IMG/VR virus record: IMGVR_UViG_3300010885_076238
Span: 124,001 to 188,000 of that record
DNA length: 64,000 nucleotides
Strand: one strand, 5' to 3'
The first letter of the stretch is position 1; each line of letters opens with the position of its first letter. The translations under genes and the position numbers were made by a program. The notes under the pieces are model-generated. The model worked only from the letters and a program-made list of their open reading frames with translations. It did no database searches and was not told where the DNA came from. This document shows, piece after piece, positions 7,332 through 60,128 of the stretch.

Positions 7332-7582
7332 TGTATTATGGATTTTACTCAAAATCTTCTGATGATCGTAATGGTCATGTGGTTTATCTAAATCCAGACG
7401 GCCAGAAAATAAAAGTTTCTTATGCCACCAAAGACCCACTTCTAGATTATTTTAAATTTAAGTGGGAAGATAAGGTTTTTGTTGGGCCTTTGATTAAGTT
7501 GGTTGAAATTAATTGGGCTTATGGTGGGGATTATAATAGTTTGAATATTGGCAAACCACCCAATAAAATAATAATTAAATAA
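7331..7582 (+). CDS. hypothetical protein
   Basis: TAATG coupling to upstream ORF. Confidence 0.6.
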   Translation: MYYGFYSKSSDDRNGHVVYLNPDGQKIKVSYATKDPLLDYFKFKWEDKVFVGPLIKLVEINWAYGGDYNSLNIGKPPNKIIIK

Positions 7583-7589
7583 GATCGTT

Positions 7590-8045
7590 ATGCTAATGGA
7601 GGCAAATATGATAATCAAAGAATGGCGTTTGCATTATTGTTCTGGTAGTAGCGACAAGGTTTATGTTGCTAGGATAGAGAAGCGTTCTGATAAATTCTAT
7701 GGTGTTCCTTGTGAATATGGTCGTAGGGGCGCCGTTCTTAGGCCAGCGGACAAAGGTGTCTATAGAACTCTAGCAGAGGCAGAGAGAGCTTTTTACGATG
7801 TTGTGACTGAAAAGACAGCCAAGGGCTATGCTATAACTGATAGGATTGAAAGCGATGGGGTAAAAGTAGAATCATCAATTAAAGATGAGATAGTTAGGCA
7901 ACTGGAGGCGGTAGGATCAGCTACAGCAGATGATTTGGCTAAGGCATTGGCTTCAGAAGTTGTTTCTTCTACTGAATCTAAGGAATGTGGAGAAGGTGAT
8001 AGAGAAAAGGCTTTGGCTAGGCTCAGGGCAGCGAGTGCGTGGTAA
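7590..8045 (+). CDS. WGR-domain-like protein
   Basis: SDKVY...EYGRRG...EKTAKGY. Confidence 0.8.
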   Translation: MLMEANMIIKEWRLHYCSGSSDKVYVARIEKRSDKFYGVPCEYGRRGAVLRPADKGVYRTLAEAERAFYDVVTEKTAKGYAITDRIESDGVKVESSIKDEIVRQLEAVGSATADDLAKALASEVVSSTESKECGEGDREKALARLRAASAW

Positions 8046-8377
8046 AAAATTAAAAGGTGTTTTATGAGTGTAATGGGCGATTTTTTATTTGTTTCTAGTA
8101 TCGGCTTGACAATTTGTTGGGCTTTAGGAAAATTAGCCGGAGTTGATATTGTGCCGAGTATAGGTCTTTTGCTAGTATATGGCTTGCTAGTATTTGCCAT
8201 ATCACTAAGATCAGAGGGCTAAGATGAAGCAGCAAGTTGTAATACTAAAAATTAAATATGACGATCAGGAAAATTTCGCTCCCCAAAATTGGAATTGGAG
8301 CGAGTTGTTGGGTTGTAAAAATGATTGTGTCCAAGTGATGAATTATGGAACTATAGAAACTATAGAGGAGTTGCCGG

Positions 8378-8596
8378 ATGAATGAAGAATTCCACGAATA
8401 CTTGAAAAAGGTGATGTGGTATGCAGAGCAGGAGTATGATGTTCCTGCTGTTTCGGTAGAGGATTTTGAAAAATCGCCTTTGTCGAATGTTCTTTTGAGT
8501 CATTGCTTTACATACTTTTCTAGTAATTATCCTTTTCAAAATTGTGCTTGTTCGCTCGTCGAATACATGAAGCAGTTGATGAGTTGCCAAGAATAA
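8378..8596 (+). CDS. hypothetical protein
   Basis: GAGGAG RBS. Confidence 0.6.
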   Translation: MNEEFHEYLKKVMWYAEQEYDVPAVSVEDFEKSPLSNVLLSHCFTYFSSNYPFQNCACSLVEYMKQLMSCQE

Positions 8597-8815
8597 AAAA
8601 CTTTGATATAATACCTACTGTTTATTTCTCAGTTTTTTTGGAGATCATCATGAGCAAAACATACACTCCATCAATTAAAATCTGGCAGAATGAGGAAGTG
8701 GTTTTAATTAGTGATGAGCTTAAGATTGAATTAAAAAATATCATTCTTAATATTAAGGGTGATGTAATTCAAATTGAAAATAAAAATAAAATTGAATCGT
8801 TATAGAATTGAACAC

Positions 8816-9086
8816 GGGAGTGTAGACCAACGGCAGAGTCAAAGGACTTATGAAATTGAGTGCCTAAAAGGAAACTTTTAGAGTAGAACTGCTTAAATTC
8901 GGTGAAACCTGTAAAATGGCAATACCGAGCGAAGCCCGAAAGGGAACGTGTAGAGACTTGACAGGCAGCACCTAAAACCGAAAGGTTATGGTGAAGATAA
9001 AGTCCAGACTACAAACCAAAAAGGGTGACGAAAGTCATAGTAGTAAGAAAATCCTTCCAGTGTGGGTTCGAGTCCCACCACTCCTA
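8816..9086 (+). tRNA. trnL: tRNA-Leu(UAA), exons 8816-8849 and 9048-9086, short variable arm
   Basis: Joined exons give AAGGA-CTTAAAA-TCCTT and acceptor GGGAGTG/CACTCCT. Confidence 0.92.
8850..9047 (+). mobile_element. ORF-less group I intron (198 nt, trnL-UAA insertion position)
   Basis: Inserted after U34, ends in G; core elements AAATTCGGTGAAA, AATACCGAGC, GTAGAGACT, AAGATAAAGTCC. Confidence 0.92.
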
Positions 9087-9539
9087 TTTTTTATTTTTTC
9101 CTCTATAATTATCCGTGAGTGCATGACAATTAGGACAAAGAAGTTCAAGATTAGACAAGTTATTATTTGAATTATTTCCATCCTTGTGATGAAGCTCAAG
9201 TGGAATTTTAATTTTCTGCCACTCTGTTCCATCACAGTTCATGCACTTATGTTCAAAAATATTTTCTCTTATTAGTCTGTTCTTTAGCTTAAAGCTTTGA
9301 ATAAATTTTTCATTGTTTAAATATGTTTGAATTGATCTCTTCGGGCCAATTTTATCTCCTTTGCTCCACCCTTGGCCCTTGAAATGAGAAGTATTAATTT
9401 TATACTTTTTAATGTATTTCTTAATAGTTTGATAATTACCACCAGCGGGTTTTATTTTTAATTTATCCAACACCTGCCTTATAGAGGTCGAATCTTGAAT
9501 AATCTTTGATAGCTTGGTAAAATTATACTTCGTACTCAT
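9084..9539 (-). CDS. free-standing HNH endonuclease
   Basis: CMNC...LELHHKDGNNSNN...NLELLCPNCH. Confidence 0.92.
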   Translation of the reverse strand: MSTKYNFTKLSKIIQDSTSIRQVLDKLKIKPAGGNYQTIKKYIKKYKINTSHFKGQGWSKGDKIGPKRSIQTYLNNEKFIQSFKLKNRLIRENIFEHKCMNCDGTEWQKIKIPLELHHKDGNNSNNNLSNLELLCPNCHALTDNYRGKNKK

Positions 9540-9616
9540 TACAATATATGTAGTAATGAGTTTTCCAAAATAATAAAAAATCTTTTGAGTTATGGTTTAA
9601 AGAGAAAACGCATCGT

Positions 9617-10036
9617 ATGAAACTTGAAAAAGAATTAAAAAGTAGGCTGAACTATCTGTTTGATATTTTTGAAAGAAATAATATCTTAGAGGTGCAAATT
9701 AATTTTTATGGCAGTGGTGATGATGGCAACATGGAGGTAGGTCATGCTTTACTGAATCCTCCTCCTGGGCCTCCTTCTGAGTTTAAGTTCGCAGATGATG
9801 TTATTTGGGATGAGCCTACAATTTTTAATGATCCACGTTATCCACCCTCAGAAAATGTATTAATTAATTTGGGTGATCTTGTTCGTGAAGTAAGCAATGA
9901 TCTTCTTGATAAAAAAGGAATTGACTACGTCAACGGAAATGGGAATGAAGGCAGCATTACTTACACGGTGAAAGGCAAAGATGTGAGTATGGCTTATTTG
10001 GTGACAGAAGATGCCGAGTATAATTTCAGCGTATAA
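9617..10036 (+). CDS. DUF6878-like protein
   Basis: FYGSGDDG motif; adjacent to a DUF6915-like gene. Confidence 0.6.
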   Translation: MKLEKELKSRLNYLFDIFERNNILEVQINFYGSGDDGNMEVGHALLNPPPGPPSEFKFADDVIWDEPTIFNDPRYPPSENVLINLGDLVREVSNDLLDKKGIDYVNGNGNEGSITYTVKGKDVSMAYLVTEDAEYNFSV

Positions 10037-10078
10037 AATAAAAAATTAATAGCCTCGTTATGTGGTTAGGAGACAAAA

Positions 10079-10501
10079 ATGGCTAACCCTTATCATCATT
10101 CTGTTAGTAGTGCCAAGAAGTGGGGCGGGGTTCCAGAGGACTACCAAGCGGTTCATGATTGGTTTGACGAGAGCAAGATGATGATGGCGGATTTCCGGCA
10201 TAGGGCTTTGAGGCATCATGCTGAAGGCATTTTCATGTGCGAAAGGATTTTTGGTCATACGATTACGATTTCGACAGGGCGCGTGGTTCCTGTTCGTTGG
10301 ATTGGTGAGCAGCATGTGAAGGAAGATTGTGGATTTATTCCTTCGATGCAGGATTGGTTTCAGCACATCAAGCCTCAGAAGTGGATGGGAGAGCCGCCTG
10401 TCAAGTTGGAGAAGTTGCTTGACAAGATGGACTTGGACTCAGAAGGTACAGAGGAAGAGAAGTGGGAGCGTCATGTTGGAGAGAAGTTGGTGAAGCATTG
10501 A
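10079..10501 (+). CDS. DUF6915-like protein
   Basis: ANPYHHSVSSAKKWGG, HDWFDESK, RHRALRHH, EQHVKED. Confidence 0.75.
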   Translation: MANPYHHSVSSAKKWGGVPEDYQAVHDWFDESKMMMADFRHRALRHHAEGIFMCERIFGHTITISTGRVVPVRWIGEQHVKEDCGFIPSMQDWFQHIKPQKWMGEPPVKLEKLLDKMDLDSEGTEEEKWERHVGEKLVKH

Positions 10502-10776
10502 AACGCTCTGATTACGAAATTGTGCGGATTGAAGATGACCGAGTTTTCATTGTTGACCTTGATCTGGGCAATGCAAGTGTAACCAATGATGCAGAAGAAG
10601 TTTTTAAGGAAATTAAACTTCATTTTCCCGGCAGGCGATTAATTTATCGAGATACTTTGTTTAATTGGGATGAAATTATTGAAGATACTCATTGGATAAA
10701 TTATATCCGTTATTTTGAGCACGTTCCGTCTGTTGATGAAATTAAAAAAATTCCAAGTTCTAGCTGGATACGGTAG
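10462..10776 (+). CDS. hypothetical protein (start uncertain)
   Basis: SVTNDAE...RLIYRDT motif. Confidence 0.6.
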   Translation: MGASCWREVGEALKRSDYEIVRIEDDRVFIVDLDLGNASVTNDAEEVFKEIKLHFPGRRLIYRDTLFNWDEIIEDTHWINYIRYFEHVPSVDEIKKIPSSSWIR

Positions 10777-10831
10777 GTTTACAGAAGATTTTTTTCGACT
10801 ATAATCACAATAACCCAAGGAGGATTTAATT

Positions 10832-10984
10832 ATGGCAGGTACGCAAGTCGGTTGTATTTCGGTCGGTGGTAACATCAATGTGCAGGCTTTTATTGACAAG
10901 GCAAAGGCTGACAAGTACGTTGTTGAGAGCGAGCAAGTGGGCAGTGATGGTCGCAAGTATATCGCAATTTGCAAGGCAGGGTAA
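10832..10984 (+). CDS. 50-aa hypothetical protein (not in ORF track)
   Basis: AAGGAGG RBS and TTTACA-16-TATAAT promoter. Confidence 0.7.
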   Translation: MAGTQVGCISVGGNINVQAFIDKAKADKYVVESEQVGSDGRKYIAICKAG

Positions 10985-10993
10985 AAATGGGGA

Positions 10994-11021
10994 TTGACAT
11001 CCGAAAGCAAGACGGTATAAT
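10994..11021 (+). promoter_or_regulatory. sigma70-like promoter TTGACA-N16-TATAAT
   Basis: Exact consensus hexamers. Confidence 0.75.
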
Positions 11022-13034: not shown

Positions 13035-13919
13035 ATGAAAACATTTGACGTATACTCTGGGATGATTCGTATTTCTGATCCTTGCTTTGACGCTGGTGCG
13101 GCTAAGGTTCTAACTCTAAAGGCCAAGAAGGGTCGATGGGTTGCTGAAGTAGAAAAGGAAGAAAAAGTCGCCCAGGATATAATTAAAACTTTAGTTGCTT
13201 ATTTTGATGAAAAGCAAACTGAACTTGCTGGACTTACCGACATTGGCGGTGATTACAACAAGGCTCTATCTATGATGTTAGGCAGACAGCCAGAACAAAT
13301 TACTCAACAAGAACTTGTTGCGACTATTGAATCTGGGCAGATTGGCATTTTTGATAATAAATCTTTTGGTGATAATAAGATTGCCGTCAATGTCGCCAGA
13401 CTTTCTGAAAAAATTATTTGCGAAGATCAACCTTGGTATAGCATTTGCTGTGACAGAGTTTTGAGTGAAGACCAGTGGGGTTCCTTGCCTAATGGCTGCG
13501 TTACTTCATCTACTGTCGATGGAGATGTTGCGGTTTCAACTCATACCAACGCCTGTGGCGAAGTAGTAAAAGTTGAAATTAATTTTGAAAAAAAAGTTGA
13601 ATCTTCTATTCCTTCTCCTTATGACGAGGACGAGGAAGAGGAATGGGAAGAGGATGAAGAGTGTGACTGCGAAATGTGCAGGGGAGAGGTAGACGACGAG
13701 GATGATGATGACGATGATGATGACGAAGAAGAGGAAGAGGAAGAGGAAGACGATGAAGAATGGGAAGAAATAGAGGAAGAAGAGGAAGAGGAAGAAGAAG
13801 TAGACGAGGACGATGATGATGAGTGGGAAGATGAAGAAGACGAGGACGATGATGATGAGTGGGAAGATTGCGAAGACGAGGATGAAGAAGAGGATGAACT
13901 TGCAAATCCAGAACGATGA
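13035..13919 (+). CDS. protein with about 100-aa D/E tail (ISDPC N-terminal domain)
   Basis: Leaderless start; IRISDPC, IESGQIGIFD; acidic repeats with interspersed W. Confidence 0.8.
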   Translation: MKTFDVYSGMIRISDPCFDAGAAKVLTLKAKKGRWVAEVEKEEKVAQDIIKTLVAYFDEKQTELAGLTDIGGDYNKALSMMLGRQPEQITQQELVATIESGQIGIFDNKSFGDNKIAVNVARLSEKIICEDQPWYSICCDRVLSEDQWGSLPNGCVTSSTVDGDVAVSTHTNACGEVVKVEINFEKKVESSIPSPYDEDEEEEWEEDEECDCEMCRGEVDDEDDDDDDDDEEEEEEEEDDEEWEEIEEEEEEEEEVDEDDDDEWEDEEDEDDDDEWEDCEDEDEEEDELANPER

Positions 13920-14019
13920 AAATAATAAAATCTAGTCTATAAAATAAAAATTTCAACTGACCGTTATCCCTATACGAACGATACAACGAACAACGAACTA
14001 AGAAAGAAAGGTTTTTACT

Positions 14020-14937
14020 ATGATTGCTGACATGGAGCGTGGCGTTTTTGTTCCCGAGATCAATGACACCTACTACATCACCCCCGACATTTCCTCGCTG
14101 TTTCGGCGTGTTTCCAAGCTGAGTGCGGGCAAGACGCAGAAGATTCTTCTTCGCGGCCCTCACGGTGCTGGGAAGACTGAGATGGCGATGCAGTTTGCCG
14201 CCAGATTCAAAAAGCCCATGCTCATCATGGACTGTGCGAATCTCAAGGAGCCGCGTGATTGGTTCGGCTACAAGACGATTGAGGGTGGCGAAGTTGTTTG
14301 GCATGAGTCGCAGTTTGATAAGGTTGTCAGTGCTGGCAATCACGTTATTCTGCTTGACGAGGCCAATCGTGTTCATCCTTCTATTATGAACACTCTTCTT
14401 CCCATTCTCGACGGTCGAGGATTCACCTATCTGGAAGAGAAGGGTGGTTGCATCCAAGTTGGGCCGGGAACGGTTTTCTTTGCGACTATGAATGAGGGAG
14501 CGGCCTACACCGGCACTACTTCTACAGACGTTGCGTTGCGAGATCGACTTGGACAACGCATCGTTGAAGTTACTTATCTCCCGAAGGAGAAGGAAGTCGA
14601 TGTTCTGATCGCTAGAACGGGCATTGCGGAAAAGGCTGCGAAGGCTCTGGTGGACATTGCCAACCAGATTCGTAAGAAGAGTACGGGCCTTGGCAGTTCG
14701 TTCTCTGAGGGGTTCTCGACTCGACAGTTGATTGCCTGTGCCGAGGATTTCGTGGTCGATGGCGTGGAGAGTCTGACGTTCACCATGACCAATCTGTTTA
14801 GTGCTGAAGGTGGAACCAATAGCGAACGTGCTGCGGTTCTCCAACTTATTCAAGGTAAGTTTGGGGTTGTGGAGAGTGCTGAATCCAAGATCGACAAGAT
14901 GAGTGCGGCGGCTAAGAGAATCAAGGGCGCGGCCTGA
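14020..14937 (+). CDS. MoxR/CbbQ/CobS-like AAA+ ATPase
   Basis: GPHGAGKT, ILLDEANR, FFATMN, ALRDR, FSTRQL. Confidence 0.92.
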   Translation: MIADMERGVFVPEINDTYYITPDISSLFRRVSKLSAGKTQKILLRGPHGAGKTEMAMQFAARFKKPMLIMDCANLKEPRDWFGYKTIEGGEVVWHESQFDKVVSAGNHVILLDEANRVHPSIMNTLLPILDGRGFTYLEEKGGCIQVGPGTVFFATMNEGAAYTGTTSTDVALRDRLGQRIVEVTYLPKEKEVDVLIARTGIAEKAAKALVDIANQIRKKSTGLGSSFSEGFSTRQLIACAEDFVVDGVESLTFTMTNLFSAEGGTNSERAAVLQLIQGKFGVVESAESKIDKMSAAAKRIKGAA

Positions 14938-43337: not shown

Positions 43338-44056
43338 TTAACGAAAGCCCAGATGCTATAAAACATAGAGAAGATATCGATAGTCCTTCTTATGGAGATC
43401 AAGACAGCGTAACTTTTTCTTTATTTGATAACTTTACTGTCTACAGCCTAAGATACAACACAAGTCATGGAGACTTATACAAATTTGTAAGAATATACAG
43501 TAAGCCTTCAGACATAGAATTATTTAAGTGGAGTGAGAACAGAGGCAAATATAGTTGGTATCTTGATCCAGAACAATTCAAGAAAAATTATGAAATATAT
43601 CATAAAGGTGAACTAACAGATAACGAAAAGAACAAAATTATAAATTTTGATATTTTTGAATTAGATAGAAGTCCAATACTAAAAGAATTTCCTAGTGTTA
43701 TTCAGGGAAGAGCATGGACCGAGAGTAAAATGATTAGCTTCTGGAATGATTTGGTTTATATAGCTTCTAGAAAAGATGATATAATAAAATTTATTAATTT
43801 AATAGGAGGTAATCCACATGCCTACCAATATGAAATCAAGGATAATTTATATAATTATGATGATTTTGTGTCGGGCAAATATAATGATAATTTAAAATTT
43901 GACCGCACAGTACTTCATACTTTACCCCCAGATAAAAAGGGAGAAGCTTTAAAGAAAATGGGAGCTGCTCCTAAACAGCCAGTTCCTTTGCAGTTCAAAC
44001 AAATGTTGCAAGGTGAGAGTTTTAGAAGTTGGCTGTATAAGCATGAGCAAAAATGA
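43334..44056 (+). CDS. hypothetical protein, tandem paralog A
   Basis: C-terminal half shared with the next gene. Confidence 0.8.
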   Translation: MINESPDAIKHREDIDSPSYGDQDSVTFSLFDNFTVYSLRYNTSHGDLYKFVRIYSKPSDIELFKWSENRGKYSWYLDPEQFKKNYEIYHKGELTDNEKNKIINFDIFELDRSPILKEFPSVIQGRAWTESKMISFWNDLVYIASRKDDIIKFINLIGGNPHAYQYEIKDNLYNYDDFVSGKYNDNLKFDRTVLHTLPPDKKGEALKKMGAAPKQPVPLQFKQMLQGESFRSWLYKHEQK

Positions 44057-44721
44057 TTATAAATGAAAATCCAAATAATATAAAAACAGTTGCGAATACT
44101 CATTATGGAGCCTCTGGTGCTACTGCTTTTGTTTTATTTAATAAATTTTATGTGCATAGTGATTGGGCTTGGGCATCTCATGATACTTTATTAAGATATA
44201 TTGCTTTATACATTCAACATGAAAAAAAAGAACTAGCTAATCAATTTAGAGAAAAAAATAAAATTAAGCATATTGGCGATCTAACAGGTGAAGAAGTAGA
44301 TAAACTAAATAGTGAAAGGGATATTGATCGACATATTATTTTAGAAATTTCACCATATGTTATTCAAGGAAGATTGTGGAGAACCACTAAAATGATTAGC
44401 TTCTGGAATGATTTGGTTTATATAGCTTCTAGAAAAAATGATATAATAAAATTTATTGAATCATTAAATAATGATCCTAAAAAATATCAATATGAAATAA
44501 AAGACAAGTTATATGACTATAATCAATTTTTATCTGGAAAGTACACGGATGATTTAGATTTTGACCCAGAGGTTGTTCACATGCTTCCTCCAGATAAAAA
44601 GGGAGAAGCTTTGAAGAAAATGGGAGTACGTCCTAAAGCTCCAGTTCCTTTACAGTTCAAACAAATGGTTCAGGGTGAGAGTTTTAGAAGTTGGCTACAA
44701 AAAGGAGAAAAAAATGGTTAA
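44053..44721 (+). CDS. hypothetical protein, tandem paralog B
   Basis: KMISFWNDLVYIASRK and GESFRSWL shared. Confidence 0.8.
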   Translation: MIINENPNNIKTVANTHYGASGATAFVLFNKFYVHSDWAWASHDTLLRYIALYIQHEKKELANQFREKNKIKHIGDLTGEEVDKLNSERDIDRHIILEISPYVIQGRLWRTTKMISFWNDLVYIASRKNDIIKFIESLNNDPKKYQYEIKDKLYDYNQFLSGKYTDDLDFDPEVVHMLPPDKKGEALKKMGVRPKAPVPLQFKQMVQGESFRSWLQKGEKNG

Positions 44722-44893
44722 TTTTTATGATTTTGAAATGATTATGGAAGGCAAGGGAGATGATGTTGTTAAATGTTCTTGTAAATGCAAAGCATGTAAA
44801 TATAATTTTTGTAAAAATTGCAGTTGCAAAGATTGTAAATGTGAAGGTTGCAGATGTGAGAGTAATATTGGAAAAAATAAGAAAAATAACTAA
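44714..44893 (+). CDS. metallothionein-like Cys-rich protein
   Basis: 11 Cys in 28 aa; AAGGAG RBS. Confidence 0.6.
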   Translation: MVNFYDFEMIMEGKGDDVVKCSCKCKACKYNFCKNCSCKDCKCEGCRCESNIGKNKKNN

Positions 44894-44901
44894 TTTATAG
44901 C

Positions 44902-45513
44902 ATGACTTATATATTTCAGCATATTCCTAGAACAGGCGGCATAACGTTATTATCTATTGTCAGGGAGGTTTATGATAATAATGATATAATTATAGATATT
45001 GACGGGAATAACTTGTGTTACAAAATGCATGATCTTTTTTATTTACAAAAGTCTCCTAAGGCTATTTTTGGACATTTACCGTTTGGTATTCATAAATTAT
45101 TAGACGGTGAATTTTCTTATATAACGGTAATGAGAGATCCGGTAGAAAGAATTAAGAGTGTTATAAATCATTTGAACGAATCAAATATTTTAAATGTTGA
45201 AGAATATTTAAAAAATTATAGTCAGAATGATATGACAAAAGCATTTGTTTATAAGCCACACACCAAGAATGAAGAAGATCACTTAGAAGAAGCTAAAGAT
45301 AACATTAAAAAATATTATACTATTGGATTTACTTCTAATTTTAAAACATTTGTAAAGTCTTTAGGTAAAAAACTAGGTTGGACTCCTTTTTATTATATTA
45401 ATAAAAATGAAAGTAGACCCTTGGTTGATTTTACAAAAAATGATATTAAAGAAATAAAAGAAAAAAATCAATTAGATATAAAGTTATATGAATGGGCCAA
45501 AAAAGAATTTTAA
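44902..45513 (+). CDS. sulfotransferase family protein
   Basis: HIPRTGG, GH, RDPVERIKS, NQLDIKLY. Confidence 0.88.
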   Translation: MTYIFQHIPRTGGITLLSIVREVYDNNDIIIDIDGNNLCYKMHDLFYLQKSPKAIFGHLPFGIHKLLDGEFSYITVMRDPVERIKSVINHLNESNILNVEEYLKNYSQNDMTKAFVYKPHTKNEEDHLEEAKDNIKKYYTIGFTSNFKTFVKSLGKKLGWTPFYYINKNESRPLVDFTKNDIKEIKEKNQLDIKLYEWAKKEF

Positions 45514-45774
45514 TTTGATATATAATTTTGGAAAAAAAAGGTAAAGATTTTGGTCGCATCACGCCAGAGGTAATTTTATGTCGTCTCAAATATTAGAAGT
45601 TTGCGTTCTTGTGATAAGTATTAGTTTCACATCTGTTGTGGCTATGGGAAGCTTATGCATGGTTTATGGTTTACTTATGGTGTTATTTGGGAAAGATGTT
45701 GATTAAATTGTGGTTTCCGCCTACTAAAAATATTTATTTGAAAAAGACTAGATAAAGAACACTGAGGAGAAAAA

Positions 45775-46323
45775 ATGAAAAATTTTCACGAATGGTTAGA
45801 AGAAAAACACCCTGAATCCCTAGAAGAGGGAATGTTTGGGGACTATATGAAAAAGGTTGCACTCCCAGTAACAGCTGCGATGGGGATGACAGCAGCACTC
45901 AGCGGAAACGTACCGCAAACAAACAACAATAAGCCCGCCGTCGTCAGGGGTGTTGGACACGCTCAAGGAGCTTCAATGAAGCCACAGTCACAGCTACAAG
46001 ATCTATACGGCCCCGAGCGAGATGATAATGGAAGACGATGGACGGATAATGAAGAATTCATGGACTATGCCGTACAGCAAGTTGAAAGACAGCTTGGGGG
46101 ATCGCAGAGCAGCAGAATACCCAAACCAGAAGGATGGGACGATTTGAGCGACGACGCACAGTATCAAATATATAACCATGCCATCTACGCACTCGTTCAG
46201 CAACATGGCGTAAAAGACAAGGACGAACTTCAGAGTATGTTTGACAGGGAGACAGCTCAAGGAAGATATGACGGATCAAATCCTTATAGAATCAATTTCA
46301 ATCCTGCTCAATTCAATCGTTGA
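45775..46323 (+). CDS. putative virion internal protein
   Basis: MKNFHEWLEE N-terminus. Confidence 0.65.
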   Translation: MKNFHEWLEEKHPESLEEGMFGDYMKKVALPVTAAMGMTAALSGNVPQTNNNKPAVVRGVGHAQGASMKPQSQLQDLYGPERDDNGRRWTDNEEFMDYAVQQVERQLGGSQSSRIPKPEGWDDLSDDAQYQIYNHAIYALVQQHGVKDKDELQSMFDRETAQGRYDGSNPYRINFNPAQFNR

Positions 46324-46698
46324 ATGAAAACCTTCTATCAATATATTTCAGAAAATCATTTTGATCAATCATTATACACAATTAATGGTAAAAATTATAA
46401 AGTTTCTGAGCTTGCCGATTGGGCAAAGAAAAATCTACGTCCAGTTGCTTTGAATATCTCAGACATTCAAAGTAAGTATATTGATGCAAAAGGTTTGTTT
46501 ATAGACGTAGAAAAAGGCGAAGATTGGTACGAAAGATCTATGAATGCAAATCTATCGTTTCCGATTTTAGTGTTGGAAAATCCAGATAACAAGTGGGAAA
46601 TTATAGATGGAAACCATAGAGTCTGGAAAGCTTGGAAAACAGGAATGCAAACTATTAATGCATATCTAATTAATCCAAATTCTTTACAGCAAATTTAA
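46324..46698 (+). CDS. ParB/Srx N-terminal-like protein
   Basis: PILV...IIDGNHRV. Confidence 0.8.
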   Translation: MKTFYQYISENHFDQSLYTINGKNYKVSELADWAKKNLRPVALNISDIQSKYIDAKGLFIDVEKGEDWYERSMNANLSFPILVLENPDNKWEIIDGNHRVWKAWKTGMQTINAYLINPNSLQQI

Positions 46699-46791
46699 AT
46701 AAATTCCCATTTGGATAAAAAAATAATAGTTGTCAGTCGATTACGCCAATTAATAATTATTTATAAGTATGCTTAGCTGCAAGGAGGTTAA

Positions 46792-47403
46792 ATGGCATAC
46801 AGTCAACTAGGTCAAGACGAATGGGTGGTTGGATTATACGGTAAAAACCCAGGATTTTTTGTTGACGTTGGTTTTAATGATGGAATAGTATTTTCTAATA
46901 CTTATCTTCTTGAAAAAAAGGGTTGGATTGGCATAGGAATAGATCCATTTCCTTTTAATTATAAAAACAGACCCAGAACAATGATCTATGAAGATCTGGT
47001 TTATGACAAGTCGAACATTACTGTTGATGTTTGTGTTTGTGATGTTTATACTGGCGTTTTTGATGACATTCGCCGCCACAAAGAAAAAACTGTTGGCAAA
47101 CCCATGGTGAGTTTAGTAACAAAGACTTTAGAGTCTGTGCTAGATGTTGCAAATTGTCCTAAGTTTATAGAATATTTATCATTAGACACTGAGGGTTCGG
47201 AGCATAAGATATTATCTTCTTTTGATTTTAATAAATATTGTTTTGGTTGTATAACGGTTGAGCATAATCACGAGAAAGAAAAACGAAAAAATATTAGAAA
47301 TAAACTAGAAGAAAATGGATATGAAATTTACAAGCAAGTAAAATTTGATGACTGGTACATCAAGTCTAGTATGAAAGAATATTTCAGTAAAAACCTACTA
47401 TGA
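46792..47403 (+). CDS. FkbM-family methyltransferase
   Basis: SQLGQD, FVDVGFNDG, SNT, LSLDTEGSE. Confidence 0.92.
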   Translation: MAYSQLGQDEWVVGLYGKNPGFFVDVGFNDGIVFSNTYLLEKKGWIGIGIDPFPFNYKNRPRTMIYEDLVYDKSNITVDVCVCDVYTGVFDDIRRHKEKTVGKPMVSLVTKTLESVLDVANCPKFIEYLSLDTEGSEHKILSSFDFNKYCFGCITVEHNHEKEKRKNIRNKLEENGYEIYKQVKFDDWYIKSSMKEYFSKNLL

Positions 47404-47410
47404 TATTTTC

Positions 47411-48139
47411 ATGAACAAAGTTTATTATCATACGTTTGCTCCTTCTGAGAATTCCGTTAATATTATTATTGATTATTTTAAGAAATGTTTAGTTGACAAT
47501 TTTTTTAATAAAATAGATCAATTTAATGTTATACTCACAGGTGATTTTCAACAAATAGCTTATAATGAGATGAAGAAGTTGTCAGATGATAAAAAAATTA
47601 ATTTTATTATAAAGGAAAAGGCTTCTGAGGGTGAAACTTTGCTGCTTCTTTATGACGAAGCTTCTAATGAGGATAAAATTTTATATTTTCATTCGAAAGG
47701 AGTAACGCAGATGAATAGTTTTTGTTTTAATAATGTAAAAGCTTGGTCGAATAAATTGCTATATTTTTTAGTAGACAAGGCAGAAGACTGTTTAAATTTC
47801 TTAGATAATTATGATTTAGTTGGAGCTAATTATTGGGGAGAACACACAACAGATGATTGTCACAAGAGTTGCAATCAGGATAAAAAGCCTCCTCCTCATT
47901 TTTCTGGTAATTTTTGGTGGACGAGGGGCGATTATATAAAAAAGCTTTCTAGGCCGGAGAACTTACAACGTGATTCTCACATAAATGGAAAAACGGATCA
48001 GGACCCTGAGTTCTGGATTTTTTCTACTAGACCGATTAGAATAGCAGCTATGAGCAATATTAAAATAAATCCTTATATTGATCCTAGTCTTTTTGAATCT
48101 TACAAGGATGAAACTCCCACATTTTCATTAATTAATTAA
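47411..48139 (+). CDS. glycosyltransferase-like phage protein
   Basis: LYFHSKG, HFSGNFWW. Confidence 0.6.
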   Translation: MNKVYYHTFAPSENSVNIIIDYFKKCLVDNFFNKIDQFNVILTGDFQQIAYNEMKKLSDDKKINFIIKEKASEGETLLLLYDEASNEDKILYFHSKGVTQMNSFCFNNVKAWSNKLLYFLVDKAEDCLNFLDNYDLVGANYWGEHTTDDCHKSCNQDKKPPPHFSGNFWWTRGDYIKKLSRPENLQRDSHINGKTDQDPEFWIFSTRPIRIAAMSNIKINPYIDPSLFESYKDETPTFSLIN

Positions 48140-48140
48140 T

Positions 48141-48380
48141 ATGAAACAAATAGAAACAGAGATGAGTCTTGCCAAGAAGTATTTGAATGGGGATTACACA
48201 GACGTGCAATTGAATTACTGGGTAGTTCAGAATAAATTTGACAAACAAAAAATTGAAAATCTTATAGATTGTTTGAGAATGGCAGAGCCTTTTTTGGTCG
48301 CTACTAAATTAATTATAGCTTTTATTTTGATAAATTATTTATTGGGATTTGCTTTATCTGTTATTTATTTTGTCCAATAA
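48141..48380 (+). CDS. small membrane protein
   Basis: C-terminal hydrophobic helix. Confidence 0.6.
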   Translation: MKQIETEMSLAKKYLNGDYTDVQLNYWVVQNKFDKQKIENLIDCLRMAEPFLVATKLIIAFILINYLLGFALSVIYFVQ

Positions 48381-48455
48381 TGGAAAAAATTTAATTTTAT
48401 CTTGGTGGCAATTTCATAAATATCTATTAGTACCAACAAGGTACAAGGAGGTATT

Positions 48456-48857
48456 ATGAAAAGGTTACTTGTGGGCTTATTTTTAGTCCTAGGATCAATT
48501 TCAGTTGTTTCTTCTGCTCAGGAGAGAATCATAAAGGTTGTTGATTTGGAAATCACATCTTATGAAGATTCATTAGTTTTGGCTAAGAATCAAGATAAAA
48601 AAGTTCTAGTTTTCTTTTCGGCAGATTATTGTGGATGGTGCAAAAAGCAAAAGGATGTTTTTTTAGAATCTGCTGTTGTGGATAAGATTAATGACTATGT
48701 TATTTGCTACGTTGACATGAGTAAAAAAGATTTGGTGTCAAAGTATAATGTTAGAACTATTCCAGCATATTTTGTTATTGATAAAAATGAAAAAATAATT
48801 AAGAAAAATATTGGCTATAAAGAAAAGAATGATTTTATTAGATGGCTAGACAACTAA
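48456..48857 (+). CDS. secreted thioredoxin-fold protein
   Basis: Signal peptide, FSADYCGWC, cis-Pro TIP. Confidence 0.88.
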   Translation: MKRLLVGLFLVLGSISVVSSAQERIIKVVDLEITSYEDSLVLAKNQDKKVLVFFSADYCGWCKKQKDVFLESAVVDKINDYVICYVDMSKKDLVSKYNVRTIPAYFVIDKNEKIIKKNIGYKEKNDFIRWLDN

Positions 48858-48893
48858 TATTTTTTATACTATAATCTATTGAAAGGATTATTC

Positions 48894-49820
48894 ATGAATA
48901 AGTTTTTATTTATATTTATTATTTTATTATCGAGGCCTGTTTTCTCTCAGGAGAAGACAGGCTTTGCTATTGATCCAAATGCAAATAATGTAGCTGCATT
49001 GTTTACAATGACAGATGAAGGCGGAAGAACTAAGAATTTAGACTTAATGGACAGCATATTTAAAGATGGATCTTTAGGATTTGAATGTCAACGTTACCAT
49101 AATGTTTCTTCTGTATTTATTTATAAAAAATTAACAGAGCTAGCTTTAAAATTAGAAGAGGACGCGACCTTACTGTTATATTTTAATAGTCATGGAGGAG
49201 GAAGCGGCGACAGGTTTGCTATGACCGCTCAGGGTGGGAGTTTTAAATTTAGTAAAGCTTTAGAATCATTGGGCAAATCTAATAAAAAAATAAAAAGGCT
49301 TATATTCCTTGTGGATACTTGTCATGCTGCTGGAAGTATACAGGATAGTTTAAAGCAGGATGGGGAATTATTAAAAAACATTCAATCAGCAAAGCCTACT
49401 GATTATCTTCCTGAACTTTCTGACGCGGCAGTTTATAATCAGCGTCCATTTAGATCTATATTTGATATTAAAAATAATAAATTAGATTTCGGTGAAAATA
49501 GTGGGATTTACAGTGAAATACTAATCATTAGTTCTTCTAGTGTTGAGGATCTTTCTATAAGGGGAGCATTTGCTTCTAGGTTGGCAACAACTTTTGGAAA
49601 AATTAAAGATAATAAGGAAGTAACAGTTGGTCAGTTTTTGAAAAAGTTTGCAGATAGTCATTTGGCAAGTGGTCAACAACCTTATTACAAGATCCTTCCT
49701 GATAATTCCATGTTTGATGAATTATTATTTGGAATACCTTATGCTAGATTGATTCCGATTGTTGATTGGGACAATGACAATAAAAATAAATCTGATTTCA
49801 TCCCTTTGCCGAGATTATGA
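48894..49820 (+). CDS. secreted caspase-like (clan CD) peptidase
   Basis: LLLYFNSHGG and FLVDTCHA dyad; signal peptide. Confidence 0.8.
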   Translation: MNKFLFIFIILLSRPVFSQEKTGFAIDPNANNVAALFTMTDEGGRTKNLDLMDSIFKDGSLGFECQRYHNVSSVFIYKKLTELALKLEEDATLLLYFNSHGGGSGDRFAMTAQGGSFKFSKALESLGKSNKKIKRLIFLVDTCHAAGSIQDSLKQDGELLKNIQSAKPTDYLPELSDAAVYNQRPFRSIFDIKNNKLDFGENSGIYSEILIISSSSVEDLSIRGAFASRLATTFGKIKDNKEVTVGQFLKKFADSHLASGQQPYYKILPDNSMFDELLFGIPYARLIPIVDWDNDNKNKSDFIPLPRL

Positions 49821-50428
49821 ACAAAGTTTTTCAAATTGGATTTAATAAATGTGCAACGACTTCTTTTTTCTTGTTATTTGGAAAAACAACAAGACCAAGT
49901 GTAAAGTCTATCCATTGGGATGTTGGAAGACTTGCTTATAAAATTCACAGAAACCATCTAGAAAACAAGCCTCTTCTTACTGGTTATGAGGAGTACACTT
50001 TTTTTAGTGACATAGAGGGGCCAATAGACGGAGACAAAAATTCTCCTTTGATATATGTTCATAAAGAATATTATAAAGATTTAGATAAACAATATCCAGA
50101 TAGTAAATTTATATTGAACACAAGAAATGTTTATGATTGGCTAGAAAGTAGAAAAAAACATTTAAATAGAAAAGACTATCAAATAAGATCGTATTTTGAA
50201 AGATGTAAATTTCATTATAAATTAAATGATCATCAGCTAGTTGAGAAATGGCTTTTGGAATGGGAAGATCATCATAACGATGTTTTAAATTATTTTAAAG
50301 ATAGGCCAGACGATTTATTGATTTATAATATTGATCATGATAATTTAGATAAAATTAAAAAATTCTTTCCCGAAATAAACTTTAGGTGCAAAGAATTTCC
50401 TTGGTCTAAAAAATTTAAGTGCTACTAG
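49817..50428 (+). CDS. sulfotransferase family protein
   Basis: IGFNKCATTS, YPDSKFILNTR, WLES. Confidence 0.85.
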   Translation: MNKVFQIGFNKCATTSFFLLFGKTTRPSVKSIHWDVGRLAYKIHRNHLENKPLLTGYEEYTFFSDIEGPIDGDKNSPLIYVHKEYYKDLDKQYPDSKFILNTRNVYDWLESRKKHLNRKDYQIRSYFERCKFHYKLNDHQLVEKWLLEWEDHHNDVLNYFKDRPDDLLIYNIDHDNLDKIKKFFPEINFRCKEFPWSKKFKCY

Positions 50429-52428
50429 TAATAAGCATTTTGTGGTATGATGCCATTTCCAAATGAATCAAATGTAACACGATATATTCCATCAGGATGT
50501 CTAGTAGGGTAATCCCAATAATCTTCATTTCTACTATTTAGTGGATCTGGTCCTTTGTAATAGCCAGCTTTTAGCCATTCGTCTTCAGTAGGAACCCTAT
50601 ACAATGCATTTTGATTTGCTTGTATGTTTGGCTGATATCCATTCAATGTGTAAGCTCCATCTAAAGTATACTCAAGACCAATAGGAGTTTGTCCCAGAAC
50701 GGCCATATTATGTAACCAATTAGCAAATTTTACAGCACTAAACCAATCTATAAAAACAACAGGTTTATTTCCCATATTTGTTTTTACAGAATATTTACTT
50801 CCAATAGAAGCAGAATTATTAAATAATATTCCCCCAGTGATATCACTACTCATTTTGGAATTATAAAAGTCATATCTGTTTCCTTCATGATCGGCTGCGT
50901 TCAAAAATAATACGTATTCGGCATTTGTTACCGGGTATTTCATTATTTTGTACTCATAATCAACTTGTCCAATCAGCTTGTAGGCGTATCCGTATTGAGC
51001 TTGTCCTCCAACATTATTGGCAGTATAATTTAAATAAGGCGGATTTCCCAAATCTCCGACCGTTAAGAATTCATTTGATCCAGACGTGAAAGAATGATAA
51101 TCTAAAGGATCAGTTGAACTGGACAATCTGAATCCAATAACATCACTTTTAATTGGATAACTATTTACCGTTCCGTCCTCATTTAAATTAATTCCTGGGT
51201 TGTTGAAGAACCTGGCGTTGGTGTGTCCCATAGAAACGTTGCCTCCTGCCCAATGTCCGCTTCTAATTCCTCTTTGATATTGTCGGTTGAACATTTCTAG
51301 TGCATCATTCCATTCGTAAACAAGACCTCCTTGATCATACGTTCCGTAATATGAAGATCCTCCATTTGTTCCTACTGTGGTGATTTTATTAGATCTACCC
51401 AGAACACCTATATTTGAGCAGTGCGGTCCGCGATTACTACCACTAAAAGTAAACTGAACCGTATCGCTTACAACAGAATTAGCTCCTGATGCTATTACAA
51501 ATCTATATCTATCTCTCGTTACAGAATCAAAATAGTCTGCGTTATTTGTGCCAAAAGATTGGCTTCGAGTTGCTTCGAAAATGCTACCATTTTGAAGAAG
51601 ATTAGAGGCTATTGTTGTGTTTTGATCTACAAATTCTCCCAAGCCATTTGTTTGCTTTTGTGTGGTGACTGTTGTGGTGCTTGGAGATGTGGTTGTAAAT
51701 CTGACAGTAAAAACCCCACGGTATTCATCGATTGAAGAATTTTGTGGTTGATTTACTATTGTTATGCTAGCTCCCATCGGAGTTTGGGTTGGCGTGGGCG
51801 TTGGTGTGATTGTATCTAAGCATTCTAAGTAATGAAATCCATCGGTAATAGATTTAATTTTATATGTTCCATTATACACTCTAGGGTCCATAATGTCCCA
51901 GACAGGGTGTGTAGGATCCAAATCTTTTTCTGCATTTGAGATGACCACTGATTCTCCGACAATAAATCCTAAATTGCCAATGGTACTATCAATGCTATTA
52001 TACAATGCAAAATAGGGATCTATGAGCAGATCCTCTCGATTAACAATATCCAAGCTGCCATGACAACCCCAATCATTAGAGACTCCTTGAATTATAATTC
52101 CACTGGTTTGCCCTGTGATAGTAGCTCTGGAATACAAATTGTTGTTATTTGGCCATTGATCAAGATTACAATTATCTTCTGGCGTTAGATTTTTCGTTGG
52201 CGTCAATGTAGGGGTTGGTGTTGGTGTTGGCCTTAAGCTTTCAATTACGCAGTTTGAATCATATTCTTCAAAGTACAAATGAACAGTTCCGTACCAATCA
52301 TCAGTAGTCCATAGATAGGGTATAATTTGATATCCCAAGTCTATAGGCTCCCCAAGAGAGTCAGGAAAAAATAATATATGGGCCAACTTTCCATTATAAT
52401 TGTTTGATGATATTTTTATTGTTTGCAT
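50425..52428 (-). CDS. PT-repeat virion-type protein with permuted FGE-sulfatase (SUMF1) domain
   Basis: PTPT linkers; GTYDQGGLVYEW, IGFRL, VTNAEY, PTEDEWLKAG. Confidence 0.85.
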   Translation of the reverse strand: MQTIKISSNNYNGKLAHILFFPDSLGEPIDLGYQIIPYLWTTDDWYGTVHLYFEEYDSNCVIESLRPTPTPTPTLTPTKNLTPEDNCNLDQWPNNNNLYSRATITGQTSGIIIQGVSNDWGCHGSLDIVNREDLLIDPYFALYNSIDSTIGNLGFIVGESVVISNAEKDLDPTHPVWDIMDPRVYNGTYKIKSITDGFHYLECLDTITPTPTPTQTPMGASITIVNQPQNSSIDEYRGVFTVRFTTTSPSTTTVTTQKQTNGLGEFVDQNTTIASNLLQNGSIFEATRSQSFGTNNADYFDSVTRDRYRFVIASGANSVVSDTVQFTFSGSNRGPHCSNIGVLGRSNKITTVGTNGGSSYYGTYDQGGLVYEWNDALEMFNRQYQRGIRSGHWAGGNVSMGHTNARFFNNPGINLNEDGTVNSYPIKSDVIGFRLSSSTDPLDYHSFTSGSNEFLTVGDLGNPPYLNYTANNVGGQAQYGYAYKLIGQVDYEYKIMKYPVTNAEYVLFLNAADHEGNRYDFYNSKMSSDITGGILFNNSASIGSKYSVKTNMGNKPVVFIDWFSAVKFANWLHNMAVLGQTPIGLEYTLDGAYTLNGYQPNIQANQNALYRVPTEDEWLKAGYYKGPDPLNSRNEDYWDYPTRHPDGIYRVTFDSFGNGIIPQNAYY

Positions 52429-52485
52429 AATGAATTAATTTATTGAATTTATCAATACAATATATATATAATTTGGAGGTAATTT

Positions 52486-55178: not shown

Positions 55179-55990
55179 AAACGGGTTTCTGTTTTACAGG
55201 AGAAGGAGCTAGAGGAGCAATACAAGCAGGAATAGCCTTGGGTTTGCATAATCAAGGCATAAATGCTGACTTTACAATTGGAATATCATCAGGATCTATT
55301 TGTGCTGCTTCATATGCGTATCTAGGACCTAAAGGATTAGCTGAAATGTGGTCTAATGTTAATAATATTTTTGATGTTTTTGGAATTAATTATAATTTAA
55401 TTGGCAAAACAGGACTATTGAATCAGAAGCCAATGCAAAAAATCTTGCAAAAAGCGATGGAAAACGAACCAATATGTGAAAGCGTTGTTATTAGAATGAA
55501 TATAGAAGATGGTTATTTAGACTATGTGTCAAATAAAGATGTATCTTCTAGCGAATTCGCAGAAGCAGTTTTAGGAAGCGTAGCCATTACTGCTTTAGTA
55601 GAAGATAGAAATGGCTGGGTAGATGCTGGGAGTCGTCAAATAGCCCCTCTAGATCAATGTATAAGGGCAGGTTGTGATAATATCTATGTGATTATGGGTA
55701 GGCCTCTTCATTTGCCTCCTTGGCAAAAACCTAAAGGTTTATTTAAATTATTTAATATGGCATTTAGGGCGTTCGATATAACCCTCTATGAAATAATGAT
55801 TAGAGATATAAATAGTTGCATAAGGGACAAGTCACACCCCGATTTCAAAAATGTAAATATTTTTTTAGTAGAGCCTAAAGAATTATTTTATGAAAGCGTT
55901 GAATTTGCCAAATGCAAAAAAGGCGTTGTTTATGGGACAACAGAATACAACAGACATGATAAAAAAGGATTGAGAAAATTTATAAAATGA
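55175..55990 (+). CDS. patatin-like phospholipase
   Basis: GEGARG, GISSG, DAG. Confidence 0.88.
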   Translation: MKTGFCFTGEGARGAIQAGIALGLHNQGINADFTIGISSGSICAASYAYLGPKGLAEMWSNVNNIFDVFGINYNLIGKTGLLNQKPMQKILQKAMENEPICESVVIRMNIEDGYLDYVSNKDVSSSEFAEAVLGSVAITALVEDRNGWVDAGSRQIAPLDQCIRAGCDNIYVIMGRPLHLPPWQKPKGLFKLFNMAFRAFDITLYEIMIRDINSCIRDKSHPDFKNVNIFLVEPKELFYESVEFAKCKKGVVYGTTEYNRHDKKGLRKFIK

Positions 55991-56253
55991 ACTTCAAAGA
56001 ATGGCTTATGAAAGAAGGTTCTAATACCGGATCTAAAACTGGTCTGTACCCTTTGGGATACGGAGGCGTAGGTTTGTATCCTCCATCATGGTACATAACA
56101 AGAAGCGCAGATGCAATTTATTATTTCACAATTGATGAAAGAATATATAAATCTAAGGATGGAGGTCTTTTTGATATTAGTCATATTCCAGGCAATAATA
56201 TAAAACAAAACTCTGGCGAGGGTGGATCTTGGAACATTACGAAAATAAAATAA
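55987..56253 (+). CDS. putative virion internal protein
   Basis: MNFKEWLMKE N-terminus. Confidence 0.6.
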   Translation: MNFKEWLMKEGSNTGSKTGLYPLGYGGVGLYPPSWYITRSADAIYYFTIDERIYKSKDGGLFDISHIPGNNIKQNSGEGGSWNITKIK

Positions 56254-56254
56254 C

Positions 56255-56716
56255 ATGACATTATCAATAAGAAAAATTAATTCTAAAGATTATAATGAAA
56301 TAGAAAATATAGCAAATCAAAGCTACTCAGAAGATTATTATGAATCTGAAGAAAGTTTCATTAGCAAGATAGAGAAATTTCCAGATGGATGTTATGTCGC
56401 TGATCTAGACGGTGTTGTGGGATACGTAATATCATTTCCTTATTACGTAGGAAAATCTTTTCCCATCAATACGAATTACGAAATAGTAGAAAATCCAAAT
56501 TGTTGGTATATACACGACCTTTGTGTTGTTGAAAGATTCAGAAACAAAGGTGTTGCAAAAACACTTGCAAAAGAAATAATTAAAAAATCATGGAATGTCG
56601 TGGCTCTAACAGCAGTGCAAAATTCAACTTCTTTTTGGAACAAGTTTGGATTTTTATCTTTTAAAATAGTAAATTACTGTAACCAAAAAGCAGACTATAT
56701 GATATTAATTAAATAA
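56255..56716 (+). CDS. GNAT acetyltransferase
   Basis: YIHDLCVVERFRNKGVA, FWNKFGF. Confidence 0.9.
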   Translation: MTLSIRKINSKDYNEIENIANQSYSEDYYESEESFISKIEKFPDGCYVADLDGVVGYVISFPYYVGKSFPINTNYEIVENPNCWYIHDLCVVERFRNKGVAKTLAKEIIKKSWNVVALTAVQNSTSFWNKFGFLSFKIVNYCNQKADYMILIK

Positions 56717-56724
56717 AGGAAAAA

Positions 56725-59405: not shown

Positions 59406-59421
59406 TATAAAATTTCTACAG

Positions 59422-59503: not shown

Positions 59504-59509
59504 GGAAAA

Positions 59510-60118: not shown

Positions 60119-60128
60119 AATGCTTGAG

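Follow-up and report, generated by a model that had tools for sequence, protein, structure and literature searches.

Free-standing homing endonucleases can mobilise neighbouring group I introns that lack an open reading frame, a process named collaborative or trans homing. [quoted passage not shown] In T4, the free-standing HNH enzyme MobE promotes inheritance of the adjacent nrdB intron, which still carries the defunct I-TevIII endonuclease ORF (Wilson and Edgell 2009, PMC2790892). Two other enzymes are directed against tRNA genes: T4 SegB, a free-standing GIY-YIG endonuclease of the T4 tRNA gene cluster, spreads itself and neighbouring tRNA genes and recognises a 27-bp site whose conserved 11 bp match the tRNA T stem-loop (PMC2330249), while I-Ssp6803I, a PD-(D/E)XK enzyme encoded within the Synechocystis tRNA-fMet group I intron, is specific for the anticodon region (Bonocora and Shub 2001, cited in PMC3984707). 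Lastly, small ORF-less introns of about 200 nt are found in trnL(UAA) genes of cyanobacteria and plastids, where the insertion site was written CUU/a...g/AAAA by Williams (10.1101/2020.01.27.920355); these classical introns are not known to have an associated endonuclease.

[quoted passage not shown] Compared to the S-PM2 system, the host gene is a tRNA gene instead of a protein gene, the nuclease gene is convergent with a stop codon that overlaps the tRNA 3' end, and cleavage is only inferred; moreover, members of this nuclease family are also found beside intron-less genes and inside the intron, in sense or antisense, while for the described cases such stages have been proposed but are not known to have been documented. 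Compared to the T4 nrdB/mobE system, the intron has no ORF, not even a dead one, and does not interrupt a protein-coding gene. Compared to SegB, the nuclease is of the HNH type and an intron is involved; compared to I-Ssp6803I, it is free-standing, of the HNH type, and found in a phage at a tRNA-Leu gene. Compared to the classical trnL introns, the intron shares the insertion site, the small size, the terminal G and the J6/7-P7-P3' core, but it sits in a phage genome, in a tRNA-Leu without the long variable arm and next to an HNH gene. Literature searches returned no description of phage trnL group I introns with an HNH partner, nor of bacterial-type tRNA-Leu without the variable arm, although the collection searched was incomplete and this is not proof of novelty.

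Results

An intron-bearing tRNA-Leu gene overlaps a convergent HNH gene

We analysed a window of 64,000 nucleotides corresponding to bases 124001-188000 of the 204,311-bp IMG/VR virus record IMGVR_UViG_3300010885_076238, which is estimated to be 88% complete. The DNA sequencing runs that contain it are freshwater metagenomes, and no RNA run was found to contain the locus. The features of the locus are the following, in window coordinates:

8584-8612, plus strand: promoter-like site (TTGCCA, 17-nt spacer, TATAAT, with TG), the likely start of the pre-tRNA transcript, inferred only from 11 of 12 consensus matches.
8650-8805, plus strand: 51-codon ORF between the promoter-like site and the tRNA gene.
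8816-8849, plus strand: tRNA-Leu(UAA) exon 1 (positions 1-34), ending in CUU, with U34 as the last exon base.
8850-9047, plus strand: ORF-less group I intron of 198 nt, of the bacterial tRNA-intron type.
9048-9086, plus strand: tRNA-Leu(UAA) exon 2 (positions 35-73), with AAAA, the 3' anticodon stem, a 5-nt variable loop, the T arm, the acceptor strand and discriminator A73; no CCA is encoded.
9084-9539, minus strand: free-standing HNH endonuclease gene of 151 aa, with the zinc-finger HNH motif at residues 99-139 (9123-9245).
9084-9086, both strands: 3-nt overlap, CTA being tRNA positions 71-73 on the plus strand and the TAG stop of the HNH gene on the minus strand.

Using ARAGORN with introns allowed, a tRNA-Leu(UAA) gene was called at 8816-9086 with an intron between positions 34 and 35, giving a mature anticodon loop that reads CUUAAAA. 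The Rfam group I intron model (RF00028, Intron_gpI) matched 8840-9015 at 57.6 bits against a gathering score of 50 (E = 5e-12; full model positions 1-253 matched), and this was the only match to this model in the whole genome. No intrinsic terminator was found between the tRNA and the HNH gene. Thus, what a sequence-only reading had reported at this locus, namely a 198-nt ORF-less intron at the U34 position and an HNH stop codon coinciding with the last three bases of the tRNA, is confirmed. Its side claim that the HNH gene is the only credible minus-strand gene in the first 42 kb is however wrong, since a minus-strand ORF of 415 aa lies at 13606-14853, while the longest stop-free run in 100 shuffles of that stretch was 219 codons. 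A second correction is that the mature tRNA is not a canonical class II tRNA-Leu, as described below.

The intron is a conserved ribozyme of the general bacterial tRNA-intron family

To test whether the intron is maintained as a ribozyme, we first scanned IMG/VR with an 18-nt motif from its J6/7-P7-P3' core, which gave 98 stretches, and then aligned 35 distinct trnL(UAA) introns of 192-208 nt taken from these and other loci. None of the introns in this set has an ORF. We then tested a structure with P1 to P9 and the P7 pseudoknot, made of 57 pairs in 13 helices: 98.9% of the cells paired and 29 of the 57 pairs showed compensatory changes, while none of 500 shuffles scored as high and controls with slid partners gave at most 10 such pairs. 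Compensatory changes were found in P2, P3, P5, P6, P8 and P9, while P4, P7 and P1 were nearly invariant. The pair between the last exon base (U8849) and G8858 in P1 was invariant in all 35 sequences, as was the terminal G of the intron (G9047). The helices in the window are:

P1: 8846-8849 with 8858-8861.
P2: 8862-8870 with 8875-8884.
P3: 8889-8894 with 8963-8968.
P4: 8899-8904 with 8923-8928.
P5: 8908-8909 with 8918-8919.
P6: 8929-8931 with 8947-8949.
P7: 8955-8959 with 9000-9004.
P8: 8969-8972 with 8990-8993.
P9 region: 9008-9044.

The sequence-only reading had stated that trnL-UAA introns are typical of cyanobacteria and plastids. We also looked at the distribution of the 18-nt motif outside of phages. 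It was found in more than 120 bacterial genomes, in introns of tRNA-Met/fMet(CAU), Leu(UAA), Arg(CCU), Leu(CAA) and other tRNAs of Nitrospirota, Bacteroidota, Chloroflexota, Proteobacteria, Acidobacteriota and other phyla, while the nearest sequences were phage contigs. The link to cyanobacteria is therefore too narrow and a cyanobacterial origin of the intron is not supported.

The HNH gene is under purifying selection

The 151-aa protein matched PHROG 10822 "HNH endonuclease" at 2.9e-40 and had 2296 relatives at E of 0.001 or better in the metagenomic protein collection, many at 60-80% identity. In 45 homologues, C99, C102, H118, N130, C135 and H139 were invariant and H117 and C138 were at least 90% conserved, so that the catalytic His and Asn and the two CxxC zinc ligand pairs of an HNH motif are present. 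Residues 5-22 were also conserved, supporting the ATG at 9539 as the start codon over the 129-aa database call. The Pfam models nevertheless scored just below their gathering cut-offs (HNH_3, 23.0 against 24.8; HNH, 17.3 against 21.4), which are near misses on a short motif. An AlphaFold2 model (pLDDT 88) predicted an N-terminal helical domain of 95 residues, presumed to bind DNA, and a C-terminal beta-beta-alpha HNH unit. A phmmer search against PDB gave no hit at E of 1 or better, and Foldseek against PDB gave only weak HNH matches, the best being McrA, the Gme HNH nickase and Cap5, all at E of 0.18 or worse, which leaves the N-terminal domain unassigned. Within the clade, dN/dS was 0.04-0.16, so the protein is under purifying selection. 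The gene is also a low-GC island, with 30% GC against 41-42% in the flanks.

The HNH family is tied to tRNA-Leu genes

To find out where this nuclease family sits, we fetched relatives of the HNH gene from IMG/VR and located the tRNAs around each of them (individual loci are designated below by L numbers). In most free-standing relatives, from 35% to 100% identity, the stop end of the HNH gene abuts or overlaps a tRNA-Leu gene, mostly UAA and sometimes CAA or UAG. Four arrangements were observed. In the first, seen in more than 20 distinct phage contigs, the HNH gene is convergent with an intron-bearing trnL(UAA) and overlaps its 3' end by 1-4 nt as in the window, on short (73-76 nt) or long (83-86 nt) tRNA bodies. 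These bodies differ in the acceptor stem, the variable region and in some cases the T stem, while all keep GGACTT/AAAATCC. In the second, the HNH gene is convergent with an intron-less trnL(UAA), with the same junction in L010 and L017 and a looser one in L031. In the third, the HNH gene is co-directional and its stop overlaps the 5' end of an intron-less class II trnL(UAA) inside large tRNA arrays (L019-L024, L035; also L026, L029/L030).

In the fourth arrangement, relatives at 36-54% identity are encoded inside the same intron family. In the 595-kb phage LR756511 (L335, 50% identity), the ORF lies in a 700-nt trnL(UAA) intron and ends directly before the conserved GTGTAGAGACT of J6/7-P7. L043, L045 and L039 are equivalent sense cases and L037 is probably one too, although ARAGORN calls its tRNA Phe(GAA), while L054, L023, L025 and L087 carry the ORF inside the intron on the opposite strand. 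Bacterial MAG contigs from Lewinellaceae and uncultured Bacilli show the sense form at 47-51% identity. In most of these intron-encoded cases, ARAGORN placed the splice site at ...GACTT / AAAATC... of tRNA-Leu(UAA); four calls (L037, L028, L408, L421) were shifted by one or two bases, L032 was called Leu(UAG) and L087 gave no call. The calls of tRNA-Phe(GAA) in relatives, and of Stop(UUA) for L028, were read as trnL(UAA) with shifted splice positions, using the rule of a U at -1 and a terminal G. In contrast, a SeC(UCA) call (L135) probably corresponds to a real UCA tRNA.

The HNH gene is enriched at intron-bearing alleles

To test whether the nuclease is tied to the intron, we scanned IMG/VR with a pattern from exon 1 alone, which is blind to both the intron and the HNH gene (all patterns used in database scans came from one exon or from the intron only, the joined tRNA being built only for ARAGORN and for length and pairing counts). 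Among contigs with enough downstream sequence, the HNH gene was present in 8 and absent from 7 of the 15 intron-bearing ones, while it was present in 0 and absent from 63 of the 63 intron-less ones (Fisher p = 2.7e-7). By distinct tRNA units, the counts in the same order were 4, 6, 0 and 29 (p = 0.0026). These p-values overstate independence, since contigs are related to one another, and the pattern scans sample subfamilies and are not exhaustive. A 12-nt footprint of the HNH 3' end followed 4 of 12 intron-bearing genes without HNH and 7 of 137 intron-less genes without HNH, compared to 9 of 5000 random windows, showing that the nuclease gene is gained and lost, as in the usual homing cycle. 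On the HNH tree, the gene of the window belongs to a clade of 26 (SH-aLRT 93), of which 23 are convergent next to an intron-bearing trnL, 2 are intron-less and nested within the clade (L010 and L017), and 1 is antisense inside an intron; intron-encoded and co-directional forms are the neighbouring groups.

A close strain carries an intron-less allele

We next compared the locus between closely related genomes. A synteny scan with the neighbouring DUF6915 gene gave at least 599 hits, but only one contig (L050, identical to L458) shares the locus, so that this comparison rests on that contig and on read data. L050 has an intron-less tRNA gene and keeps only a 56-nt remnant of the HNH gene. We then placed contigs of four DNA runs on positions 7500-11000 of the window. 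The main strain of run X3 has both the intron and the HNH gene. In run X4, a 635-nt contig covers 8264-8849 in synteny with 12 differences and then continues directly at 9048-9079, an exact 198-nt skip that corresponds to an intron-less allele in the same genomic context. This sample shows no depth over 9138-9839, the HNH region, but covers 9836-11000. The same joint appears at low depth in run X1 and in X3. Although contigs cannot prove absence and exon matches can come from other phages, the X4 contig is anchored by 586 nt of flank and is the kind of recipient allele that homing needs. Presence/absence polymorphism between closely related genomes at one locus, as expected for a free-standing homing endonuclease gene, is thus observed.

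Sequence evidence on the target of the nuclease

If the intron gives immunity against the nuclease, one would expect that a genome with the HNH gene has its target split by the intron or altered. The whole genome of the window contains no uninterrupted copy of the 13-nt anticodon-arm core GGACTTAAAATCC. The three convergent intron-less relatives with an HNH gene or its remnant all have anticodon arms that depart from this core: AGGCA/TGCCT in L010, CAAAA/TTTTG in L017 and AAGGT..G37../ACCTT in L050; L031 has U32. By comparison, about 65% of the intron-less genes without HNH found in a scan with a D-arm pattern keep the core. This fits the model but rests on 3-4 cases, with a chance probability of about 0.02-0.04 if they are independent. 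Against the model, the co-directional relatives at 58% identity (L019-L024, L035) and L029/L030 sit directly 5' of intron-less trnL(UAA) genes with the canonical core GGGACTTAAAATCCC, indicating either that specificity differs within the family or that the anticodon arm is not the target. HNH footprints also follow intron-less genes with the canonical core (L151 type, L197, L331).

The tRNA belongs to a phage family of leucine tRNAs without the long variable arm

The predicted mature tRNA has 73 nt, a 3-bp D stem and a 5-nt variable loop, and it therefore lacks the long variable arm found in all canonical bacterial tRNA-Leu. The scan with the D-arm pattern returned 186 phage tRNAs with this body, all 73-76 nt long and all with leucine anticodons (UAA 157, CAA 16, UAG 7, GAG 5, AAG 1). 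In 122 distinct intron-less members, which also lack the long arm, 98.6% of the stem cells pair with all Watson-Crick types present, and U8, A14, A15, the GG of the D loop, U33 and the T-loop residues are invariant or nearly so; A73 is present in 120 of 122 and U48 in 120 of 122. E. coli LeuRS is reported to use A73 and the A15-U48 tertiary pair and not to need the long arm (work of Asahara and of Larkin), so that the leucine identity of this tRNA body is plausible, on indirect sequence evidence only. The same intron and HNH gene also occur on canonical long-arm trnL(UAA) genes in other phages.

Discussion

We propose that this locus holds two cooperating selfish elements in a phage tRNA gene. 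In this model, the tRNA-Leu(UAA) precursor is transcribed rightwards, probably from the promoter-like site at 8584-8612, and the group I intron splices itself out between U34 and A35, leaving a 73-nt tRNA that the host would complete with CCA. The HNH gene would encode a homing endonuclease of a family specialised on tRNA-Leu genes. In a mixed infection with a related phage whose trnL lacks both elements, the enzyme would nick or cut that allele in or near the anticodon-arm sequence GGACTT/AAAATCC, and repair would then copy from the HNH-bearing genome, converting both the intron, located 39 bp from the HNH stop codon, and the HNH gene into the recipient. In the donor, the intron would split that sequence and so protect it. 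Our analysis establishes the anatomy of the locus, the conservation and covariation of the ribozyme, the purifying selection on the HNH gene, its recurrent junction with tRNA-Leu genes, its enrichment at intron-bearing alleles, the existence of intron-encoded relatives at the same site and that of an intron-less allele in a close strain whose sample shows no HNH, whereas splicing, cleavage activity, the position of the cut, gene conversion and immunity through the intron are inferred. An intron-encoded homing enzyme has to cut near the insertion site of its intron, so that relatives encoded inside the intron argue that the ancestral target of the family is near that site.

We consider a trnL-specific homing endonuclease family as well supported, and the insertion site as its target, with immunity through the intron, as somewhat more likely than not, so that collaborative homing is the best reading of this locus. 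The sequence-only reading, which inferred that the HNH enzyme cuts intron-less trnL alleles of competing phages or of the host and that the intron gives immunity, is thus supported only in part. It had itself named a distribution of the HNH gene independent of the intron as evidence against it, and this is partly what we found: about half of the intron-bearing genes lack the HNH gene, relatives at 58% identity sit next to intron-less trnL with the canonical anticodon arm, and footprints follow some canonical intron-less genes. As for cutting of the host gene, it stays a conjecture on which our data do not bear.

The strongest alternative, which we consider possible but unlikely, is that the HNH protein is a free-standing homing endonuclease of the trnL region whose recognition site is not the intron insertion site. 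It could be the T arm or 3' end of the tRNA gene, by analogy with SegB, or the junction between the tRNA and downstream DNA, which the HNH gene itself disrupts. The intron would then be a passenger, co-converted because it lies 39 bp away, and would give no immunity; linkage at this distance would produce the association by co-conversion wherever the cut lies. The position of the HNH stop at a tRNA end, the 3' end in convergent cases and the 5' end in co-directional ones, the relatives and footprints beside canonical intron-less genes, and the intron-bearing genes without HNH are all consistent with this view. On the other hand, it does not fit well with the relatives encoded inside the intron at the same site, with the altered anticodon arms of all HNH-bearing intron-less genes in the clade of the window, or with the finding that the cassette occurs on different tRNA bodies that all keep GGACTT/AAAATCC.

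It is much less likely that the HNH enzyme acts as a takeover or competition weapon that cuts the trnL(UAA) gene of the host or of unrelated phages, with the phage supplying an intron-protected tRNA of unusual shape to replace the lost function. The core GGACTTAAAATCC does occur in class II trnL(UAA) genes of bacteria and the phage carries its own tRNA-Leu(UAA) with a different body, but nothing in our data separates this from ordinary homing, which predicts the polymorphism seen between close phage strains; this would be a possible added effect rather than an alternative. Finally, although HNH genes are common and scattered in phage genomes and a second paralogue lies at 59639-60118 in this genome, the idea that a decaying or domesticated nuclease landed next to the intron by chance is contradicted by the recurrent junction, the association with intron-bearing alleles, the low dN/dS and the intron-encoded relatives.

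A further reading, which we put forward only tentatively, is that this HNH family and this trnL(UAA) intron together preserve, in living phages and bacteria, the stages proposed for the birth of a mobile group I intron, since the nuclease is found beside an intron-less target gene, beside an ORF-less intron as in the window, and inside the intron in either orientation. The pair in the window would then be an active collaborative-homing system, sitting on a phage family of leucine tRNAs whose shape may itself be an adaptation, for example to evade host nucleases that cut tRNA variable arms.

How ORF-less ribozyme introns and free-standing nucleases merged into mobile introns is an old question that rests on two laboratory examples, the S-PM2 psbA intron with F-CphI and the T-even nrdB intron with mobE. 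The locus described here opens a large natural family of hundreds of environmental phage contigs in which one nuclease lineage is seen free-standing, paired with an ORF-less intron and embedded in the intron, in most cases at one 13-bp site of a tiny and easily synthesised target gene, which makes the collaborative-homing model directly testable with short DNA substrates. It also gives a clade in which changes of nuclease specificity, immunity by intron and immunity by target mutation can be compared. As a by-product, it reveals a widespread phage tRNA-Leu class without the long variable arm, which bears on tRNA identity rules and on the contest between phages and hosts over tRNAs.

A leucine tRNA family without the long arm and other features of the window

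The tRNA gene at 8816-9086 belongs to a phage family of 73-nt tRNA-Leu that have a 5-nt variable loop instead of the long arm (loci L149-L334; L numbers denote loci retrieved for comparison with the window). We found 186 copies of this family (122 distinct intron-less sequences), and all of them carry Leu anticodons only (UAA, CAA, UAG, GAG, AAG). No description of this family was found in the papers searched. Its stems covary strongly, and A73 and A15-U48 are conserved.

Other features were identified in the window:

13606-14853, minus strand: a 415-aa ORF
about 44000: a sharp step in base composition
59639-60118, minus strand: a second HNH gene, of 159 aa
60220-60357, minus strand: tRNA-Asn(GUU) with a 64-nt insert
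60862-61213, minus strand: a tmRNA

The second HNH gene is 42% identical over the motif and matches PHROG 10822 at 2.7e-17, and it sits in the tRNA cluster between tRNA-Trp and tRNA-Ser, next to the unusual tRNA-Asn gene. The insert in this tRNA-Asn(GUU) lies in the anticodon loop and is too small for a group I intron, and it has tRNA-like arms itself: a 6-bp stem CCACTG/CAGTGG and a T-arm-like hairpin CTGGGTTCAAACCCCAG. The Rfam tRNA model scores 56 bits across 136 nt. Similar 50-nt inserts were called by ARAGORN in tRNA-Arg(UCU) of L082 and L136 and in tRNA-Ser(UGA) of L036.

The tmRNA (Rfam, 127 bits; tag peptide GTNSYAMAA) is encoded beside a cluster of nine tRNA genes. The 415-aa ORF gave no Pfam or PHROG match, and it is far longer than chance allows. 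As for the compositional step, bases 1-44000 have 40-52% GC and bases 44001-64000 have 30-33%, while the genome mean is 34.7%. This may be a mosaic module or an assembly join.

Related introns and intron-borne HNH genes at other loci

Related group I introns interrupt many other phage tRNA genes: Thr(GGU) in L061, L088, L097, L111 and L125; Asn(GUU) in L070 and L078; Gln(UUG) in L127; Lys(UUU) in L104; Met(CAU) in L097/L148; Leu(CAA) in L040 and L141; and, in L135, a tRNA with anticodon UCA that also has a distant HNH relative next to it. In the 735-kb phage LR756501.1 (L002, 25-1053 and 2472-2762), a canonical long-arm trnL(UAA) with a 205-nt intron of this family lies about 1.4 kb downstream of a leucyl-tRNA-synthetase-like ORF, with no HNH nearby.

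In Pelagibacter phage HTVC120P (L004, 19433-20607) and Chosvirus KM23C739 (L003, 21756-22832), the capsid genes are annotated as two CDS, and the gap between them matches the core of this intron family (73-89% identity over 74-153 nt). These are probably unannotated group I introns in capsid genes of marine podoviruses.

In L087 (10279-10982), L054, L023 and L025, the HNH gene lies inside the trnL(UAA) intron on the strand opposite to the intron, corresponding to an antisense intron-borne endonuclease. In L066, L120 and L081, ARAGORN called putative tRNA-Ser genes (AGA/UGA) with 666-702-nt introns of this family that hold only the C-terminal half of an HNH ORF, and these may be decaying intron-borne endonucleases.
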